This document shows, one piece after another, positions 34,527-60,247 of a DNA stretch of 64,000 bases; the stretch's first letter is position 1; every line of letters starts with the position of its first letter. Below the pieces are notes generated by a model. It ran no database searches, was not told the origin of the DNA, and was given only the letters and a program-made list of their open reading frames with translations. The stretch covers positions 24,552,001 to 24,616,000 of the forward strand of contig OZ365112.1 of assembly GCA_977030845.1 (NCBI GenBank), in the 5' to 3' direction. The stretch comes from Fimbriosthenelais zetlandica (lineage: Eukaryota). The position numbers and the translations under genes were made by a program.

Positions 34527-34559
34527 CTGAAAAATTGCAAAATGATGTAGTGAATACCA

Positions 34560-34576
34560 CCCCCCCCCCCCCCCCC
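34560..34576. repeat. C17 homopolymer
   Basis: 17 consecutive C; lies within the predicted minus-strand intron 34527-34910. Confidence 0.85.
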
Positions 34577-34910
34577 GCCCACTATCCACACCACCAATAT
34601 GTCTGGAAATATGCATAATGTAATGAACAGATTAAGAATTATAAGAACAAATAAGAATTATAAGATATTATTTTAGCACATATAATTTTATTAATGTTAA
34701 ACACCTGTATTTGGGTTAAATACAAATTGCAGTCGCATTATCTTACATTTTTAACTTGTTAAATGCTAAGAAAATGTCAAATTACATACTTTTAGTTCAA
34801 AATGACGATCCATCGCAAAGAGCGCCTGGTCTGACCAAGCGGGAGATCGGGAAACCAAAGACGGTACAACGACAGGGATGACAGGGATGCAACTTTTGCC
34901 CTTTCCTTAC

Positions 34911-35251
34911 CCCCGCACATGCGCCACCTGTACGGCCGCGCCAGATCTAATTAGTCACGTGATCATCGACCAATGAGCAAGCTCCTAAGATCCACCTGTC
35001 GTTGCTTGGCAATGTAGTGTTTACATCAACATGTTAGGCTCCTCATAGCCAATGAGAAGGCTTCTACAATCTACCACCCCCTCCATCTGAGGTTGCCATG
35101 ACCTGCTGGGATTTGCATTCTCTCTGGGCCAATGAGAAGGCTGATCTGGGAAAGTCGGGTGATTAGGCATGGGTCTGCCTGCAGAAGCGACCTAGAGACA
35201 GAAAACGTCGGTCACTTGATTGCTGGACAGCAAAGGAGACTATTTATTCAG
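34911..35251. promoter_or_regulatory. Candidate bidirectional promoter with divergent first exons
   Basis: CCAATGAG at 34970, 35049 and 35129; TCACGTGA 34955-34962; octamer ATTTGCAT 35111-35118. Plus donor CAG|GTGAGT after 35251; minus donor GGG|GTAAGG after 34911. Confidence 0.55.
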
Positions 35252-35853
35252 GTGAGTGCTCTCTCATAGGAGTTATTGTATATATATTCTTTATATTTTA
35301 CCCTCCTCCCTGCCACCTTTCTCCACCTGGCTTTGGACATTCAACTGTATTTTCAAAATTTATTGAATCTTACTTTAGTAACTTACTGGGATTTTTACTC
35401 TTATTTTTGACCTTTATTAGATTAGTAATTTTTGTAATTCAACAAAATTTCTTTAGTTGTATTCTTGCATTTGCATGTTAATTATGTCCATGCCAGTTTT
35501 GTGGAGAATGACCAATGGGATTTTACAATAGTCTACACTGGTTTCTTCTTATTGTAATTTAGTTGCTATATAATATATTTGGACTTTGGTCTGAATTTCT
35601 TGATAAAATTATTGTAAATGGTTTTGAATTTAGTTGAGTTTGGGAAGCCATGCCACGTGACTCTGCCGGCACCCCTCAAACCAGTAACAATATGGTGACC
35701 ATTTTAACTTATCACAGACTGGCCCCATTACTATAATGCACTGAAACTATTGAGTTAGCTTAGTTATTTTTGTTTATATCTAAGTACAATACTGATGAAC
35801 AATTTTCTGTCTTTTCATACAGAGACGACCGGACGTGCAGGGACTCTAGGCAT

Positions 35854-36059
35854 TTTGTCCAGCCTTCCATTTGTCCAGCCTTCCATTTGTCCAGCCTTCC
35901 ATTTGTCCAGCCTTCCATTTGTCCAGCCTTCCATTTGTCCAGCCTTCCATTTGTCCAGCCTTCCATTTGTCCAGCCTTCCATTTGTCCAGCCTTCCATTT
36001 GTCCAGCCTTCCATTTGTCCAGCCTTCCATTTGTCCAGCCTTCCATTTGTCCAGCCTTC
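35854..36059. repeat. Perfect 16-bp minisatellite (TTTGTCCAGCCTTCCA) x ~12.9
   Basis: 12 full identical units from 35854 plus 14 nt of a 13th. Explains all six overlapping periodic ORFs at 35760-36210. Confidence 0.97.
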
Positions 36060-37559
36060 AAAAAGTAAGTTAACATTTTGTTCATTTTTCTTGAGCCGAA
36101 GTAAGATTTGGTGGCATTGTGGTGGCGTTCATGAAGGCAGGTCTGCAGTATCTCAATGGCTAGTGAATTACTACGCTTTCTATTATTGCCAAATTTTCCC
36201 CTTGTTTTAGGCTGTCTAACAAGGTAGCATTTTTATAAATTATCCGGAAACATTTAGAGATTAGAGCTTTATTTGTGCTCTAAATTAAATAATAAGTTTC
36301 AGAAATTCCTTTCGACAGTTAACAGCCGTTGTGCACTAAATTATCACCAAAATTCGTCTAACCTTTCAAAGCATATGTTAACTAAATTACCCCCAAATGA
36401 TTTTGTTTGCCTCATGAATGCATCAGCTATGAAGCCACCAGATTTTATTCTAGGCCTTACCTCTTTACTTGAATACAAGACTTGAGCTTTGGTTATTTTT
36501 CACACCGGTTAAAAGCTTAATTTAAAATTGTCTTTCACCCTATTGGCCAATATAGATTTTCAATTGTCATATTAGGTATTTTATCATCGGTGAATTTAAA
36601 AGTGACCAAATTCTCAGATAGTTCCAAAAATCCTTCAGTCCGCAGCTCTAGTCTTTATTCAAGCATTTTTTTTTTAGCAATTGCAACATTCAGTTATGAA
36701 AATTAAATCATGCCTGTAGCCACATGTTGTCCCAGTGGAGGTGGGCTGTGTATATATTGGTTACTAGTTTAGGGTCCTCATTGGTAATTAGGAATAGGAT
36801 ATCAATGGTTGCCTGGGGGGTGTTATATATTTGATTCGGCTTAGGTTGGAGGTTCATATACTGTATTCATTAGTTATGGTCCTAATTAGAAATTAATAGG
36901 GGAGGCCTTTTTTAAGATCCTTGTTGCGGTATAGGTCAGTATTTTCTATATTTTGAGGACTTCATATTAGTAAATTCGTTTGGTGTAGGGGTCGTATTTG
37001 CTAATTAGCTGGGTTCCTACAATGTTAATAACTTGGATAGGCGCGAGAATTGTCCATTAGATTAGTATTTAGTTAGGTGGTGGGATAGTGGGGTGGTGAT
37101 AATCTAGTTAAATGGTCGCAATTCCGAAATAGTTGGGGCGAGGGGCTTATTTGGGGGTTCAGTTTCATATTTTGTCATTAGTAGTGGGAGAAATGTAGTT
37201 GGTTGGGGGCTATTATTGAGTTAATTAGCAGGTATTTAATGAGCAATTAGTGGGTTATTTGCTTAGAACGGGGATTGTGGTACTGTTTCATATATTTACT
37301 TGGGAGGGATGGTAGGATGGGGTTGCTTATTTTAGCTCAGAATGTCAGGTCTATATTGTTCTGCAGCCAGGGACACTGCCCTCCCACAGACCCACCCGGC
37401 CCTCCCTGGCTACGGGCATGATTTAAAGTGGAATATCTAGTGGTAGAGATGCAGTAAATTTCCTAGGTTAGCAAACCTTCAATATCCTCTTAGTTGACTT
37501 AACCCGACTAGTCAAGACCTTAACTATTTCCTATTTAATTATATCCAAATTAGTCAGTC

Positions 37560-37970
37560 CCAGTAAAATCTAATTTCCATGTAGGTAATGTAGCTCTATA
37601 ATCGTCTAGCTAGGCACGTTTATTAGCAAATTCCTAGAGAAATTTGTCTAATTATGCTTATACCTAAATAAGCCAAGAAATCTAATTTCCCTGTGAGTTA
37701 TGTAGCTCTAGGTGGCAGTGAATCAAGAATTTTCCAACTATACTAGTCCGGTTTGGTGTAATTTAGCTCTAGACAGGCATGTGATAATTTTATAGCTAGT
37801 CATTTTTGCAGGCAAATTACTAGAGAAAGTGGCTACACTGTATTTATAATTTCTAAATTAGCCAAAATGTTCCCCTGTAAGTAATGTAGCTCTAGATGGG
37901 TATTTAATAACTTCTCAGCCAGTCATGATTGTTAGCAAATTCCTAGAGTAACTTTTATTAGCAAATTCCT
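37560..37970. repeat. Degenerate tandem repeat (TAGCTCTA and TAGCAAATTCCT motifs)
   Basis: TAGCTCTA at 37591, 37703, 37764 and 37887 with similar upstream context (e.g. AATCTAATTTCC(A/C)TGT); TTAGCAAATTCCT recurs near 37602, 37932 and 37958. Confidence 0.65.
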
Positions 37971-38069
37971 GCAATTTGTCTACACTGTAAATATAATGTA
38001 CATATATCAGTATATAGCCTGAGGTGAAGCTGAGTGCTCATAATTTCAGATTTGAAGAAAACAGAAGTA

Positions 38070-38255
38070 GGTATTTCTGTATGTTCAATTTTATTGTGAA
38101 GAAATGTTCTTTTCCAGTGAGGTGTCAAAATGATTATCTTGATTTCTAAGACTGTTTTATGTCCTCTTTTCCAGGGGATATCAATGCAGCAGAGGTAAAG
38201 TCCAGGAGATGTCTGAAAACCGACCATTGTAGCAGTTTGAAGTCCCAAAGAAGAC
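38070..38255 (-). ncRNA. Candidate terminal exon of the same transcript
   Basis: Acceptor cttcttgtttttcag|G at 38256/38255; AATAAA at 38095-38090. The 3' end is approximate. Confidence 0.4.
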
Positions 38256-38605
38256 CTGAAAAACAAGAAGTTGCAGCTTGATTCTTATGGTGAATAAAAT
38301 TGTTGAACTGAAATTGTATATATGTTTGTATTCCTTTTACAGCTCTTTTAATTTGTTTGGTCTTTCTTGCCCAATTAATGGGAAGATTGACTGAACAAAT
38401 TAAAAGATGTGCCTCTGGGCTTAAGTCTGGAGGTCATTTTTTGAAAAATCCTAGCCGTGTGGGCAGAACCTATCTCGAGTGTCAACGTCAACTGGCCCCT
38501 CTGGCCATTGACAGTGCGATTGGACTTAGAAGATATTCCAAACTCTACTGTCAGTAGTGACTAGTCACGACTGACAGTGGAGAAGGAAATAAAAAAAAAA
38601 AAGTT

Positions 38606-38824
38606 ACTGTCAACTAGTTGACAGTGCTTCTAATAGAAGCACTCAACTAATTGACAGTAGAGAAGAAGATAGAAATAAGAATAAAATAGAAGATAGAAAT
38701 AAGAATAAACTGTCAACTAGTTGACAGTGCTTCTAATAGAAGCACTCAACTAATTGACAGTAGAGAAGAAGATAGAAATAAGAATAAAATAGAAGATAGA
38801 AATAAGAATAAACTGTCAACTAGT
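38606..38824. repeat. 103-bp tandem duplication (2 copies plus partial) built from palindromes and a nested 24-bp purine-rich repeat
   Basis: ACTGTCAACTAG starts at 38606, 38709 and 38812 (period 103); the two full units read identical. Each has ACTGTCAACTAGTTGACAGT (20-bp palindrome), AGTGCTTCTA-A-TAGAAGCACT and AGAAGATAGAAATAAGAATAAAAT x1.9. Confidence 0.93.
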
Positions 38825-40801
38825 GTCAGTGTCTATAAGAGACATGGACAGTGACAAATGTACTTGAACTACTTTAATGAATAGAGTATTAAAGGAATCA
38901 AGATAGATTAGTTATTAAGGACTTATTAAAGGAAATAAAGTTAGAATAAGGAAAAGTACTTGAACTAAAATTAAATCTACCTGAAAAAGACAATGAATAC
39001 AAAAATTACTTAGTTCTATGCCTGTGCTAAGGTTCAAAAACTTCTAGCCACTGTGACCAATAGGAGGAGGAAATGATAATAAAGGGTGGTGGGAGGGGTA
39101 TAGGAGGGACAAAATTAAAGGAGGCTAGACTAAGGAGAGAGGGTGAATGCGGTAGTGGGTAGATTAAGTGGCAAAGGAAAAAGGTATATATAATAGGGTA
39201 AAGGCGGGGTAAGAAAGGGATTATGAGGATTATGAGAGGGAGGATGACAGGAAATAAAATAAAATACAAGGGAAGGGAATGATGACTATGTTGGCCATAA
39301 AGGGATGGAATGGAAGGTGGGTGGGGGTTAGAGAAAGGTAAGGGTGAGAAAATTAACAAGGGAATACGGATAGTCTATGGCAATTAGGCGAATGGCTAGC
39401 ACAAGCATAGGACTAAATATAAAAGGAATACATACACCTAGTTGGATTAGAAAGAAGAAACTTAATATAGAGAAACAGCACAGAATAATATCTCAAGTTC
39501 AATGGACTGACCTGAAGACAACTAGATGAAAAGATTTCAATTGAATGATACAGAATAATCTAGAGGGATAGAGGACAAAATAACGGTCCTAACACAAGAA
39601 CTAAATGGACATAAGCTACGGGGTACAACAAATACAACTGGTTGTAATCAAATGAATGGACTAAAGACGAGAGAAAATATCAATAGAATTCAATGGTCAT
39701 GACTATAAACTAAAATAACCTAACAAGCCAAATATTGCACTGAATTTAATAGACACAAAAAAATGAAGTAGAATATGACATACTAAATCTACAAAACTGG
39801 ATCAATATCAAACGAATGGACTAAAGAATATTTAATGGAAGGGAAAGGAGGACAATGCGAATTAAATTAAATTCAGATGGGCCCACAAAATGGGAGAGAA
39901 AGGACATAAATGTCAATAGAGTTAAATTCAAAATAGATAGAACGCACTCAGTACAGAGGCAATATAGAATACAACTACAATAATTATAAGGAGATAATAG
40001 GCGACAAAGTACCCCCACTCAATGAGATGATAGATTTTACAAGTAGAATTATACCAATGAGCTACAATGGGATGATCTAGGACAGAAATAAACCTCAAAG
40101 TAATAGCCATGAAAGAATTATAATGAAATTAAAGAAAATATATAAGGCCAAGAAAATGTGTTTGAATATCAACTCTTTTTTGCCAAAAATTGACATCAAA
40201 TTTAGATCATCAGGCTGAAATCTCGATAATTTAGGTGGCAATCTAGGTCATCGGTTCTGTCTTAATTCCAGAAATTGTTTTCTTTGGTTCCTTGATGGAA
40301 AGTACAGTAATTTGTATCTACATATATATGGGTCTCTCTTTACTTTTTCGCTTATAATAATAGATAACAAGATTGGCAAACCATTTAAACTGCATTAAAT
40401 GGGAGAAACATCTTTAAAATCCCGCGTCACCGCATCATTACTGGCCAGATGCAGGTGACGCCAAACAAAACATTTTGTGGCCTCAAAAAAGAGTCAAGAA
40501 TCAAAGAGAACAAACTCAAAAAGAGGTTCCGGTCTATCTACAATCTCAACTTTCATAAAACGCTAACAAACGGACAAAAGACACTAAAATAGAAGAGAAA
40601 TTGGACAAGACCTCAACAAAAAACTACCCATGTTACAAAAGACTAAGCTGAAAAGAAGGGCTGCAGACAAGACCCCTAACAAGTCAAACGTCCAGAGAAC
40701 ATGGATGTTAATAAGTGTACTTAGCTGACTAAAACATGCAAAAGGTACTTAATACCTAATAGTTATGCATCAGTCAATGTGCCGCCCTCCCCCAACCCCT
40801 A

Positions 40802-40981
40802 GGCTGACCAGGAGATTTCAGACCACGTCCCAAAAATTGTGTCTAAACAAGTCGGAAATATTGTGATTTTAAAATAGTGTCGGTGAATGGGTCTAATATT
40901 TAATGTTTTGAACTTTCCAAAGCGAAAAATCTGAAACCCACGTGGTTCTGCCCCAAACTGGTCTGAACCCCCAGGTCAGCC
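40802..40981. mobile_element. MITE-like element, 180 bp, imperfect ~24-bp terminal inverted repeats
   Basis: Left GGCTGACCAGGAGATTTCAGACCA (40802-40825) versus reverse complement of right (40959-40981) GGCTGACCTGGGGGTTCAGACCA; AT-rich non-coding interior. No TSD identified. Confidence 0.5.
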
Positions 40982-41041
40982 CGCGGGGGCGGTGTTCGGG
41001 GGCACATTGACTGGTGCATTAATTAATCTGAATTGTCTTAC

Positions 41042-41171
41042 CTTCAGCCAGGTAGTCAGGAGGAAGTCGGATGACAGCTGTGCCTGATGACATGTTCCAG
41101 TACATATCAGCTGTTGACATCAATACGAATGGCTCCGAAGATCCAGTACCAATGTCTCAGATGATCCAGTC
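41042..41171 (-). ncRNA. Candidate internal exon (130 nt) of the same transcript
   Basis: Acceptor tttttttgtgttactttcag|G and donor AAG|GTAAGA; no through-open frame, ATG at 41120. Confidence 0.5.
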
Positions 41172-41853
41172 CTGAAAGTAACACAAAAAAATATCATAAA
41201 TAGAAACAGAGATGTGATTTAAAGAGTACAATTATTAGCATGAAAAACAGTGTGGTGCTTGGAAGAGGGGTGGGAAGGGAAAAGCAATGAGGAAGAGGGG
41301 AAGGTATGGTCAAGGAGGAAACTTAGGGGCGGTGTAAGGAACAGAGGGAGGGTTGGGCTGTGGAAAAGGAGAGGATGGTGCCTCACTATTAAGCCTTAAA
41401 GTTTTTATTTTACTTAAACACACATAGGTTATTTGTCTAAGCTATTCAGCGCGGTAGTATATATTTTTAGTCACACTCAATGCTTGTAATTTTAACAGTA
41501 CTTTAGACAAGATAAATGTTTGTTTTCATATTATATTAGCCCTCTAATCTAGGAAGGCCCCGTGTAATACATGTATAGTTACCAACACATTTGGTGGTCC
41601 ATTTTAATAGAAATGATATGCCAGTGCACATATTAATTTTGGATTATGACGTTTCACAAACCTCAGCAATGTGCGAGAGAGGACGCCATATTGTTCACAC
41701 TAGTTGAATCCTGAGACAACCTGCACAATTCAAGGTGCAATTTCTCCCCGATATCCAACATGTAACATCATATTAAACGTCAATATACATTCCCTACAAT
41801 ACGAACTTGATGTTCGACACGAAAATAGTTGAAAAATCAGGTTAAAAACTTAC

Positions 41854-41983
41854 ATTTTCGTGAATATTTCCGTAGGAATTAGAACTCCAACATGCAGGCT
41901 AGCTTCAAGGGCAACGAGGGGTCCACACATTTGTCATCAAGGGGTAGCAGGAGGTGTTCGGATCAATAAGCCAGTACAATGGT
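41854..41983 (-). ncRNA. Candidate internal exon (130 nt) of a minus-strand spliced transcript
   Basis: Acceptor cttttgccttatttcag|A and donor AAT|GTAAGT; stops in all three frames. Confidence 0.5.
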
Positions 41984-42424
41984 CTGAAATAAGGCAAAAG
42001 ATATGACTTTGCACATTCCGATAAAGGCAAAAAGATATACTAAAATACTTCGGAAAATGTGTTTTTCTATCCATACCATATTTTTATGATAGATTTCGGA
42101 GTAATTGCCTTAGAGAGAAGTCATAAGGGCAACGGTTTCTGAACACACCCAGGCTGACCAGTCAATCCTGATCCGCTAATTATAAGTTGGGGGTAGGGGT
42201 GGGGGTGCCAATAGCAGTGGCGGATAGAGGAGAAAACCTGTCTGTATTGCATTTTACGGGAGATTAAATACTTTCACTTTAATATTAGAATTAATGGTAG
42301 AATAAATTCCCGGGTGAGGAGGTGTGATACCCGCATAAATATCCTACCAAATATATTGCATTTGGAGGGCGATAGCCACATAATAGTCCGGAGGGGATAT
42401 ATTGAATATGAAATGGGAAAAGTT

Positions 42425-42505
42425 TGACATTGGTGGGATTCGAACCCATGTTTTTGTTGCATGTAAAATGGCAGTCCAACACCTTAACCACTCGGCCACT
42501 GAATC
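42425..42505 (-). pseudogene. tRNA-Ser(GCT)-like pseudogene or tRNA-derived SINE head
   Basis: Minus strand GATTCAGTGGCCGAGTGGTTAAGGTGTTGGACTGCCATTTTACATGCAACAAAAACATGGGTTCGAATCCCACCAATGTCA. A box (TGGCCGAGTGG), B box (GGTTCGAATCC) and long variable region resemble eukaryotic tRNA-Ser, but acceptor and anticodon stems pair poorly. Confidence 0.75.
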
Positions 42506-59002: not shown

Positions 59003-59893
59003 TTAAATGTTCGTGTCATCCTCAAACGCCTCAATGTCCAGTAACTCATTCGGCGGGATATCCTGCTCAGCCGCTGCTGGCGTGCTCACGAAATCTGTTT
59101 TGCCTTTCGCTGAAGGCAAAACCTCGTTGTTGGATGACATTGTGTCGTCATCCATGTCTGCCTCTGACGTCTCACTGTTCCCTTGTAATCTTTTCTCCTC
59201 GTCTTTCTCTTCATCTTTCTCTTCATCTTTCTCCTCGTCCTCCTCCTCGTCCTCGTCCACCTCTTCCTCTGAGTTGACCATCTCTTTGTCGTCACCGAGC
59301 TCACCGCCCTCCTCTGGGGTGAGGTCTTTGTAGGGCAACTCTTCACCACGTATGTCACAGATTACATTCGTCAGACTTTTGATATAGTTCTTGGCTAGTG
59401 TCAGTGTCTCGATTTTCGACAGTTTCCGGCCTAGTCTCACATGAGGGATAACTTCCCTGAGTTCCTGGAAGGCGTCATTCAGCGAATGCATGCGTTGACG
59501 CTCACGTTCGTTGCTCTCCAACCTTCTCATGTTGCGCTCGCGGGCGGAAACGCCTTTCCGCCGCCGCGTTGACTTTCTTTGGGGTGCTTTACCTCCAGAA
59601 CCAGCAGTTCGCTGGTTTCTCTCAGTGAAAGCCTCGTCATTGGTGGAACTGACGCCGGAATCTGAAGGTGGAGAGCCGGGTGAGTTGCTCATTTGGCGTC
59701 TATTTCTCATGTGATAGTCAGTAGGTCGGGAGATGCTCGTGTCCCACGAGGATTCGGTGGGTTCAACAGCTAGGGAGTTTTCTCCAGCGTAACTCTGGCA
59801 GTTGGGCGGCGCATCCCCCTCAGCGACACGCAGCTCCAGCATGTGAGCCATCATAGCATTGGTTTTACCACCTCCAGCTCGTGAACGCATCTC
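59003..59893 (-). CDS. bhlha15: Mist1/dimmed (bhlha15-family) bHLH transcription factor, main coding exon (ATG at 59890 or spliced to an upstream exon; stop 59005-59003)
   Basis: Translation contains [64 protein letters not shown] (bHLH 59372-59527), matching the Mist1/Dimm signature ([24 protein letters not shown]....[15 protein letters not shown]). Acceptor gtgtgttctctttgcag|GAG ATG at 59894/59893 shows the first 19 aa of the ORF-track call are intronic. Orthology is by recalled family motif, not a search. Confidence 0.95.
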
Positions 59894-60247
59894 CTGCAAA
59901 GAGAACACACACAACTCATTTAAAAAAGTTATCAGGTAAAAATCCAACACTTAATAATGCTGATGCAAACTCTTTTTCTGTGCAATTCGAGTTCACATGT
60001 TAATTGATTGCAATGGCTGGTGATTTACACATGGATTACTGACAATTTTGTCATGCAAAGAGGTCTGTTTATAGTATAAAGACATTCAGAGATGTTTGCC
60101 TTTGTTGGTGTCGAGTCTCATTAACGGTTCTATCTGTATATATCTATATTTGTATTTAACATTCCAGATAAGTAAATCCACTGCTCTGACTGGAGGGCAT
60201 TGTTTTGTTATTTTCTTGCGCATATAATGATCTCATTCTTTTAACAG

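Follow-up and report, generated by a model that had tools for sequence, protein, structure and literature searches.

Among the described systems closest to the locus analysed here are the amplified microRNA (miRNA) clusters that lie in non-coding host transcripts, for example primate C19MC and zebrafish mir-430. Our subject is a cassette of nested palindromes in a 64,000-nt stretch of the genome of the annelid Fimbriosthenelais zetlandica (assembly GCA_977030845.1, contig OZ365112.1, positions 24,552,001 to 24,616,000, forward strand); this whole stretch is called the window, and coordinates are positions in it unless a contig or copy is named. The cassette contains palindromes 1, 2 and 3, also called hairpins 1, 2 and 3, and lies downstream of hairpins A, B and C (Table 1). 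Like the amplified miRNA clusters, it belongs to a family with many paralogous units on one chromosome, in which hairpins are better conserved than the non-coding host sequence, and the upstream hairpin A has the dimensions of a miRNA precursor (pre-miRNA) and combines conserved arms and compensatory changes with a variable loop. Unlike those clusters, the copies are dispersed in both orientations at a median spacing of ~200 kb and form no tandem array. Palindromes 1 and 2, moreover, differ from Drosha substrates in having perfect stems and tiny loops. No Rfam miRNA family matches the locus.

Other systems share single traits with the cassette. The arms of Drosophila hairpin RNA (hpRNA) loci are hundreds of bp long and derived from target genes, whereas the cassette stems are 14-32 bp, self-complementary and have no known target gene, no search for one having been made. 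Two reports on hpRNA loci (PMC10292708, PMC10317233) describe them as yielding endogenous small interfering RNAs (endo-siRNAs), and such a locus is like the cassette in its inverted repeats in a presumed RNA polymerase II non-coding RNA (ncRNA), its fast copy-number dynamics and its amplification on one chromosome. Short GC-containing palindromes in many copies also recall the 3' hairpins of Helitrons and Helentrons, but the cassette is not at the end of an element, and no HUH or helicase gene, defined termini or insertion-site signature accompanies it. Palindromes within a palindrome and alternative folds are likewise found in the inverted terminal repeats (ITRs) of parvoviruses and adeno-associated virus. 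Such an ITR, however, has the arrangement A-B-B'-C-C'-A' at a genome terminus beside Rep and capsid genes, whereas the arms of the cassette are themselves palindromes (a 20-nt palindrome, a centre and the same palindrome again), and the cassette sits inside a non-coding unit, 18 kb or more in length, with no viral genes.

The reading that we prefer, with a probability of about 0.42, is that the cassette is the downstream hairpin array of a multicopy ncRNA, whose palindromes serve as small-RNA precursors or as platforms for proteins that bind double-stranded RNA (dsRNA).

The cassette and its family

The first-pass annotation of the window had described a 32-nt palindrome with one mismatch at 38547-38578, a perfect 20-nt palindrome (ACTGTCAACTAGTTGACAGT, hereafter P20) starting at 38606 and at 38709, a 10-bp stem adjoining each P20 with an alternative fold of all 53 nt as one hairpin (2-nt bulge and one mismatch), repetition at a 103-bp period, and ten TGACAGT motifs within about 310 bp. 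All of these are present as described, and the folding check that it had proposed gave strongly negative scores. Hairpin 1 folds at -26.1 kcal/mol (z = -6.1, window copy versus shuffled sequence) and the two 53-nt hairpins at -31.3 and -29.6 kcal/mol (z = -7.2 and -7.6), so that single hairpins range from z = -6 to -7.6, and the DNA fold of the entire interval 38500-38860 reaches z = -11.7. Tandem Repeats Finder reports 38606-38831 with a period of 103, 2.2 copies and 98% matches, both full units being identical. TGACAGT was counted ten times in 38509-38818 (310 bp), compared with 16 times in the remaining 63.7 kb of the window, a local enrichment of ~100-fold. The whole-window total of 26 stands against 10.1 expected, and none of 100 shuffles got to 26.

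A similarity search of the window's own genome (447 Mb, 79 contigs), combined with pattern counts, found many copies of the cassette at 81-93% identity in both orientations. With up to two mismatches allowed, the whole genome holds 76 sites of a 24-mer taken from the conserved core, 67 of them exact (control: 0), and one additional copy carries a 6-bp deletion in this 24-mer, which brings the family to ~77 copies. A single-copy scar of replication template switching, which had been named as the outcome that would count against the first-pass interpretation, is thereby not borne out. P20 has 127 sites genome-wide (control: 0) and is essentially confined to the family, its sites being accounted for by the ~77 copies with one to three each. 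Outside this genome, an invariant 23-mer of the core had no match in metagenome contigs, and the four metagenome matches to the 20-nt palindrome include three, inspected individually, that lie in bacterial contexts (one of them terminator-like) unrelated to the cassette.

Unless stated otherwise, the analyses that follow cover 37 distinct copies of the ~77, the window copy included, which were compared with flanks of 1.5 kb (19 copies), 10 kb (10 copies) or 1 kb (15 copies). Most of the family lies on one chromosome: C13 carries 61 copies between 22.96 and 40.19 Mb, in both orientations and at a median spacing of ~200 kb, and the remaining copies are on C19 (8), C27 (3), C1 (3), C25 (1) and C10 (1). 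In a tree of the 37 cores, well-supported C19, C27 and C1 clades are nested among the C13 copies, and neighbouring copies pair with each other. Such chromosome-specific clades and paired neighbours are the pattern of segmental duplication, not of transposition, and by these relationships the family has spread through local segmental duplication and reached other chromosomes in a few seeding events. Among C13 copies, the window copy sits on the longest terminal branch of this tree (0.22, against a median of 0.038) and is, judging from its sequence, a decaying member of the family.

Sequence on both sides of the cassette is collinear for kilobases in 37/37 copies, and the cassette is therefore internal to the repeated unit and not an end of it. 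The unit in the window measures 7.5 kb; with copy c30.43 as reference, the unit is at least 17.8 kb long (typical copies at least 18 kb). In the window the unit is truncated on the left, since other copies run on there into a tandem array of ~2.3-kb repeats, which forms the left part of typical units (e.g., L021:700-2400, C13:30.42 Mb). These ~2.3-kb repeats are far commoner than the hairpin family (991 first-look candidates) and are apparently concentrated in the same 17-Mb part of C13. No convincing terminal repeats or target-site duplications (TSDs) were found at the unit edges.

The unit appears devoid of coding capacity in the searches made. No open reading frame (ORF) longer than 150 aa occurs in the units fetched, and a Pfam scan of 17 ORFs from the window unit and a full-length unit gave no match, except for an unrelated basic helix-loop-helix (bHLH) gene 17 kb away. 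Two shorter ORFs were considered and rejected, namely a 145-aa ORF in a well-conserved block, which has stops and frameshifts in other copies and is part of another repeat, and a 22-codon ORF in the core, which is frameshifted in copy L002. Rfam scans by E-value of the window copy and an intact copy yielded nothing above threshold, the hits being to assorted miRNA families, U4atac (19 bits) and U7 (14 bits).

Plus-strand RNA structure and the proposed transcript

Between 38063 and 38700 the window is 90-99% identical to the other copies, as against 65-85% in the flanks. Scored against reference copy c30.43, the block that holds hairpins A to C is 86-97% identical (only three of the 19 scored copies fall outside 88-97%) and the block that holds hairpins 1 to 3 is 78-97% identical, with flanks at ~70-85% that are often only partly alignable. 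For copies on other chromosomes the values are 86-96% in the A-C block and 78-93% in the palindrome block. Within the core, TCATTTTTTGAAAAATCCT is identical in 32/33 copies and the ATTTTTTG run is invariant in 33/33. Compared with the family consensus, the window copy has a 17-bp deletion in hairpin B and, further upstream in the left core, lacks a segment of ~56 bp that the consensus has as a tandem repeat.

The upstream hairpins carry the signature of a structured RNA on the plus strand. In the 33-copy alignment, 99.6% of the cells of the upstream structure are paired, while slid controls all stay at or below 56%. Four pairs show double changes, in 13 cells (UA to GC, GC/GU/AU, AU to CG and AU to UA), counts that were reached by 1 and 0 of 500 shuffles, respectively, and the covariation score of 0.048 (against 0.034) was reached by none of the 500, in a test whose structure was derived from the very sequences tested. 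Of the G·U pairs, four do not vary in any copy and seven or more others are polymorphic; on the minus strand each would be an A·C mismatch. In keeping with this orientation, RNAalifold gives -76.6 kcal/mol on the plus strand (-78.9 in a second run, alignment A1) versus -45.7 on the minus strand, and a full-length copy folds at -231 versus -194 kcal/mol.

Hairpin A alone folds at -37.8 kcal/mol on the plus strand and -32.1 on the minus strand, and contains compensatory pairs (UA to GC, GC/GU/AU and AU to CG) together with two invariant G·U pairs. It has the form expected of an animal miRNA precursor, namely an imperfect hairpin of ~55-70 nt whose arms are conserved, whose loop varies and whose pairing survives through compensatory changes. 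Hairpin B, where intact (e.g., L002:1414-1457), is an 18-bp stem with a 5-nt loop, and its pairs vary as AU/GU, AU/UA/GU, UG/CG and UG/UA with 99.8% of cells paired. In both hairpins the variation is concentrated in the terminal loops and the stems are kept. Hairpin C is nearly invariant, with 99% of its cells paired. Overall, the alignments offer good evidence that a plus-strand RNA has been under selection for hairpins A and B.

The 5' arm of hairpin A (38336-38360) also matches the consensus of U7 small nuclear RNA (snRNA; RF00066) over UUACAGCUCUUUUA and AUUUGU, which we take to be the histone-pairing region and the start of the Sm site of U7. Hairpin A was nevertheless rejected as a U7 snRNA, with a score of 14.1 bits against a cut-off of 34, no U7 3' hairpin, and U7-like letters that are paired and covarying, unlike the 5' end and Sm site of a working U7, which should be neither. 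The best U7 candidate in the genome lies at C10:8412478-8412544 (29.1 bits).

Further upstream, the promoter-like region retains three CCAAT boxes (CCAATGAG type) and a CAG/GTGAGT donor in 10/10 copies, in a region that is otherwise 63-72% identical to the window. The third CCAAT box, searched as a 22-mer with at most two mismatches, was found at 75 sites in the genome, while its control matched nowhere. Among 77 cores, 73 have a same-strand third box no more than 25 kb upstream, in 68 cases at 2.6-4.7 kb, with a median distance of 3661 bp. The acceptor AG of the putative second exon is shifted by 2 nt in most copies, and in the window copy this exon is swollen by a perfect 16-bp tandem repeat (TTTGTCCAGCCTTCCA, ~13 units, 35854-36061); other copies have a single diverged 16-bp unit, making the expansion private to the window copy. 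A plus-strand non-coding transcription unit that reaches the hairpin core is plausible from this arrangement.

The mechanism that we propose is as follows. Segmental duplication would have multiplied a lineage-specific non-coding locus to ~77 copies, most of them in a 17-Mb part of one chromosome, and each locus would be transcribed on the plus strand from the three-CCAAT-box promoter ~3.6 kb upstream. The core of the predicted RNA would present, in order, hairpin A, hairpin B, the invariant U-run, a small hairpin, hairpin C and palindromes 1, 2 and 3, the last three separated by purine-rich linkers. In such an RNA the palindromes would form long, near-perfect stems (14-16 bp and 26-32 bp), and together with hairpins A and B they could be small-RNA precursors, as Dicer- or Drosha-type substrates, or platforms for dsRNA-binding proteins. 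Transcription, the inclusion of the palindromes in the RNA that holds hairpins A and B, and processing to small RNAs are all presumed here. The hairpin-siRNA source suggested by the first-pass annotation survives in that a source of hairpin RNA is still the best reading, although the palindromes lack significant covariation.

Several observations weigh against the palindromes being part of such an RNA array. Hairpin 2 shows no double changes, and its paired cells (97.3%) are hardly more frequent than in shuffles (97.1%); hairpin 1 has one CG to GC double change (in L048), which was reached by 76 of 500 shuffles. Substitutions in hairpin 2 show no strand asymmetry (7 transitions to G·U and 6 to A·C, plus strand), and the long-hairpin and three-hairpin folds of palindrome 2 score alike on substitutions. 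A perfect 26-bp stem with a 3-nt loop, as in hairpin 2, is atypical for an animal pre-miRNA, and both palindromes 1 and 2 fit a miRNA precursor poorly (perfect stems, loops of 3-4 nt, no significant covariation). Rfam at its gathering thresholds has no match in the cassette region. An AATAAA lies just upstream of hairpin A on the plus strand and another at 38093-38098 on the minus strand, and the palindromes might therefore lie outside the RNA that holds hairpins A and B. Finally, all four allele combinations are present at core sites ~60 bp apart, a four-gamete violation, which indicates gene conversion or recombination among copies; such exchange could raise identity without any function.

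Table 1. Positions of the cassette, its upstream hairpins and associated features in the window
Feature	Position	Strand	Remarks
Repeat unit in window	34650-42190	+	BLAST collinearity with 10 other copies ends abruptly at ~34650 and ~42190
Promoter-like region and putative first exon	34950-35251	+	Three CCAAT boxes; GT donor 35251/35252
Putative second exon	35812-36066	+	Donor AAAAAG/GTAAGTT conserved in five other aligned copies
Left part of conserved core	38063-38339	+	Column conservation at least 0.9 from ~38063 (37-copy alignment); other copies 93-99% identical
Hairpin A	38340-38411	+	~27 paired positions, internal loop, variable terminal loop; pre-miRNA-like shape
Hairpin B remnant	38412-38433	+	~17 bp lost in window copy
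Invariant ATTTTTTG run	38436-38443	+	Hairpin B on one side, a small hairpin of 5 bp on the other; looks like an Sm site or terminator
Hairpin C	38487-38512	+	10-bp stem predicted by RNAalifold; first TTGACAGT motif at its 3' edge
Palindrome/hairpin 1	38547-38578		32 nt, one A/G mismatch; perfect in family consensus
2 x 103-bp tandem duplication	38606-38811		Hairpin 2 and purine-rich spacer; private to window copy
Palindrome/hairpin 2, first copy	38606-38658		53 nt; 2-nt deletion and one substitution relative to consensus
Palindrome/hairpin 2, second copy	38709-38761		Duplication product; identical to first copy
Degraded hairpin 3	38812-38852		3' arm gone in window copy
Exon-like block	41043-41171	-	AG/GT splice dinucleotides and flanks kept in 10 copies
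Second exon-like block	41862-41985	-	AG/GT splice dinucleotides and flanks kept in 10 copies

Instability of the palindromes and competing explanations

Hairpin 1 is a perfect palindrome of 32 nt both in the family consensus and in most copies, and hairpin 2 is, in the consensus, a perfect 55-nt palindrome (27+1+27) made of P20, GCTTCTA-A-TAGAAGC and P20 again. Hairpin 3 is imperfect (ACTGTCAACTA-TGACAGTGTCTATAAGAGACATTGCCAG-TAGTTGACAGT) and is followed by further TTGACAGT-GACAGT-GGAG modules. GACAGT motifs occur outside the hairpins as well, as tandem repeats (TTGACAGTGACAGTGGAG). The number of P20 elements ranges from one (L044 and L046) to three (L050 and L042), and the A-runs and spacers vary in length among copies. 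The centre of hairpin 3, TGTCTATAAGAGACA (38826-38840; L002:1749-1763), presumably resembles the Tn5 mosaic end in 14 of 15 letters, but it recurs at the corresponding place in over 25 copies, natural variants among them, and is therefore not adapter contamination.

The 103-bp tandem duplication, which the first-pass annotation had counted among the design features of the cassette as a head-to-tail arrangement, turned out to be private to the window copy, with no counterpart in the 36 other sampled copies. Its breakpoints fall within a direct repeat, ACTGTCAACTAG, that is common to hairpins 2 and 3, and the best explanation is slippage, or else unequal exchange, involving the ACTGTCAACTAG repeats with which the two hairpins begin. 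As the two 103-bp units do not differ at any position, the duplication is recent; it may also be an artefact of assembly. P20 is its own reverse complement, so that two P20 copies are direct and inverted repeats at the same time and slippage is to be expected, and this self-complementarity accounts for the loss, the triplication and the private duplication seen in the family.

Against this turnover stands some evidence that the long stem of hairpin 2 has been maintained. Its centre is a 3-nt loop in most C13 copies and contains an insert of 5-8 nt, a real loop, in the C19 and C25 copies, and the long stem is kept in these different clades despite the differing loops. In L047, L048 and L055, 1-nt deletions in both P20 arms mirror each other. 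Both observations would favour a stem that is preserved as such.

The competing explanation that survives best, though we consider it rather unlikely, is that the palindromes have no function and form an unstable minisatellite, generated by template switching and slippage around GACAGT, beside a constrained RNA element made of hairpins A to C. Their similarity among copies would then come from gene conversion, possibly initiated by breaks at the palindromes, and the symmetry of their arms from hairpin-templated correction. The missing covariation and strand asymmetry of the palindromes agree with this, as do their frequent turnover (one to three P20, variable A-runs and spacers, the private 103-bp duplication), the GACAGT tandem repeats outside the hairpins, and the four-gamete violations in the core, which point to conversion. 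In the copies on other chromosomes, moreover, conservation is lower in the cassette block (0.78-0.89) than in the A-C block (0.86-0.96). Yet the palindrome columns have a mean identity of 97% for hairpin 1 (alignment A2) and 98% for hairpin 2 (alignment A3), compared with flanks at ~70-85%, and conversion would have to be focused on a few hundred bp in ~77 copies and across chromosomes to produce such a contrast. Long perfect palindromes are normally lost, whereas most copies, in all chromosome clades, have kept hairpin 2 perfect or almost perfect, and the mirrored deletions preserve the stem.

It is also unlikely that the cassette acts at the DNA level, as an enhancer, silencer or insulator in which ~10-16 clustered half-sites ACTGTCA/TGACAGT are bound by a dimeric protein. 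The ~100-fold local excess of the motif and the failure of all 100 shuffles to reach the window total would suit such an element, though they speak to motif excess only. Conservation without covariation is what a protein-binding site predicts, and the recurrence of the motif outside the hairpins within the cassette and the fixed spacing of the inverted pairs point the same way. The hexamer TGACAG is, we assume, the site of TALE homeodomain (Meis/TGIF) proteins; this label depends entirely on the hexamer, which counts against it. Clusters of binding sites, however, usually tolerate turnover, while the spacers of the palindromes (GTAGTGACTAGTCACTAC and GCTTCTAATAGAAGC) are as conserved as the half-sites. 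Mirrored deletions that keep the distant arms of hairpin 2 paired would not be needed for independent sites, and the neighbouring constrained elements are clearly RNA structures of one strand.

That the palindromes are termini or subterminal structures of an HUH (Helitron/Helentron-type), parvovirus-like, or foldback or miniature inverted-repeat transposable element, or the footprint of an excision, is very improbable: the family is multicopy in both orientations and its nested palindromes share the ends ACTGTCA...TGACAGT, as a mobile element might, but the cassette is internal, with flanks collinear for kilobases in 37/37 copies, no P20 copy needs placing outside the family context, the bases flanking the palindromes are not direct repeats and no TSD surrounds any of them, the units examined contain no Rep, helicase, capsid or transposase ORF and no Pfam match, and chromosome-local clades are typical of segmental duplication. 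The rolling-circle (Helentron-type) termini and the parvovirus-like terminal hairpins put forward in the first-pass annotation are abandoned on these grounds (internal position in all 37 copies, no TSD, no Rep, helicase or capsid ORF in the units examined), while the multicopy and hairpin-RNA parts of its interpretation hold.

If the array is expressed, as in the hairpin-RNA reading, it would represent a large, lineage-specific family of structured ncRNA genes in an annelid, a group whose ncRNA biology is little explored. Its design is unusual in that the palindromes are built of palindromes, and small RNAs derived from the arms would match their own family in sense. Since each P20 arm is its own reverse complement, a small RNA from either arm would be perfectly complementary to the sense transcripts of every member. 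We think it doubtful, if attractive, that the ~77 loci are chromosome-enriched, self-targeting small-RNA genes in an autoregulatory circuit or one that silences a chromosome domain. Were that so, a convergent, spliced minus-strand transcript would join the circuit, which would be comparable to amplified conflict loci held in check by hairpin RNAs, and hairpins A and B would count as one more structured small RNA, of a sort not described before. If the array is not expressed, the cassette would be an ordinary unstable palindromic minisatellite within a segmentally duplicated non-coding unit. The ~77 paralogues, being of graded age, constitute a clean natural data set from which the fate of long perfect palindromes in an animal genome can be read, whether they persist, disappear, duplicate or are corrected.

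Further features of the unit and its surroundings

Two exon-like blocks of ~125-130 nt each lie on the minus strand in the right part of the unit (Table 1). They keep no reading frame, having stops in all three frames and indels that are not multiples of 3, and they may be part of a convergent non-coding transcript that overlaps the core, as far as splice-site conservation can suggest. The AATAAA of this putative transcript, at 38093-38098 on the minus strand, falls where the conserved core begins on the left. A 35-nt inverted repeat (40765-40799 and 40985-41019), whose arms are 77% complementary and 185 nt apart, lies in a different well-conserved block of the unit.

Just left of the truncated unit edge, at 34558-34580, is a run of ~17 C, which may mark a breakpoint or a spot prone to assembly problems. 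About 240 bp to the right of the unit, a tRNA-like sequence (42425-42505, minus strand) scores 29.7 bits with the Rfam tRNA model, just above the cut-off. The bHLH gene mentioned above, for which an exact gene look-up returned no record, is an intronless transcription factor ORF on the minus strand (59003-59950; Pfam HLH, E = 5e-19) with an acidic, Glu/Asp-rich tail.

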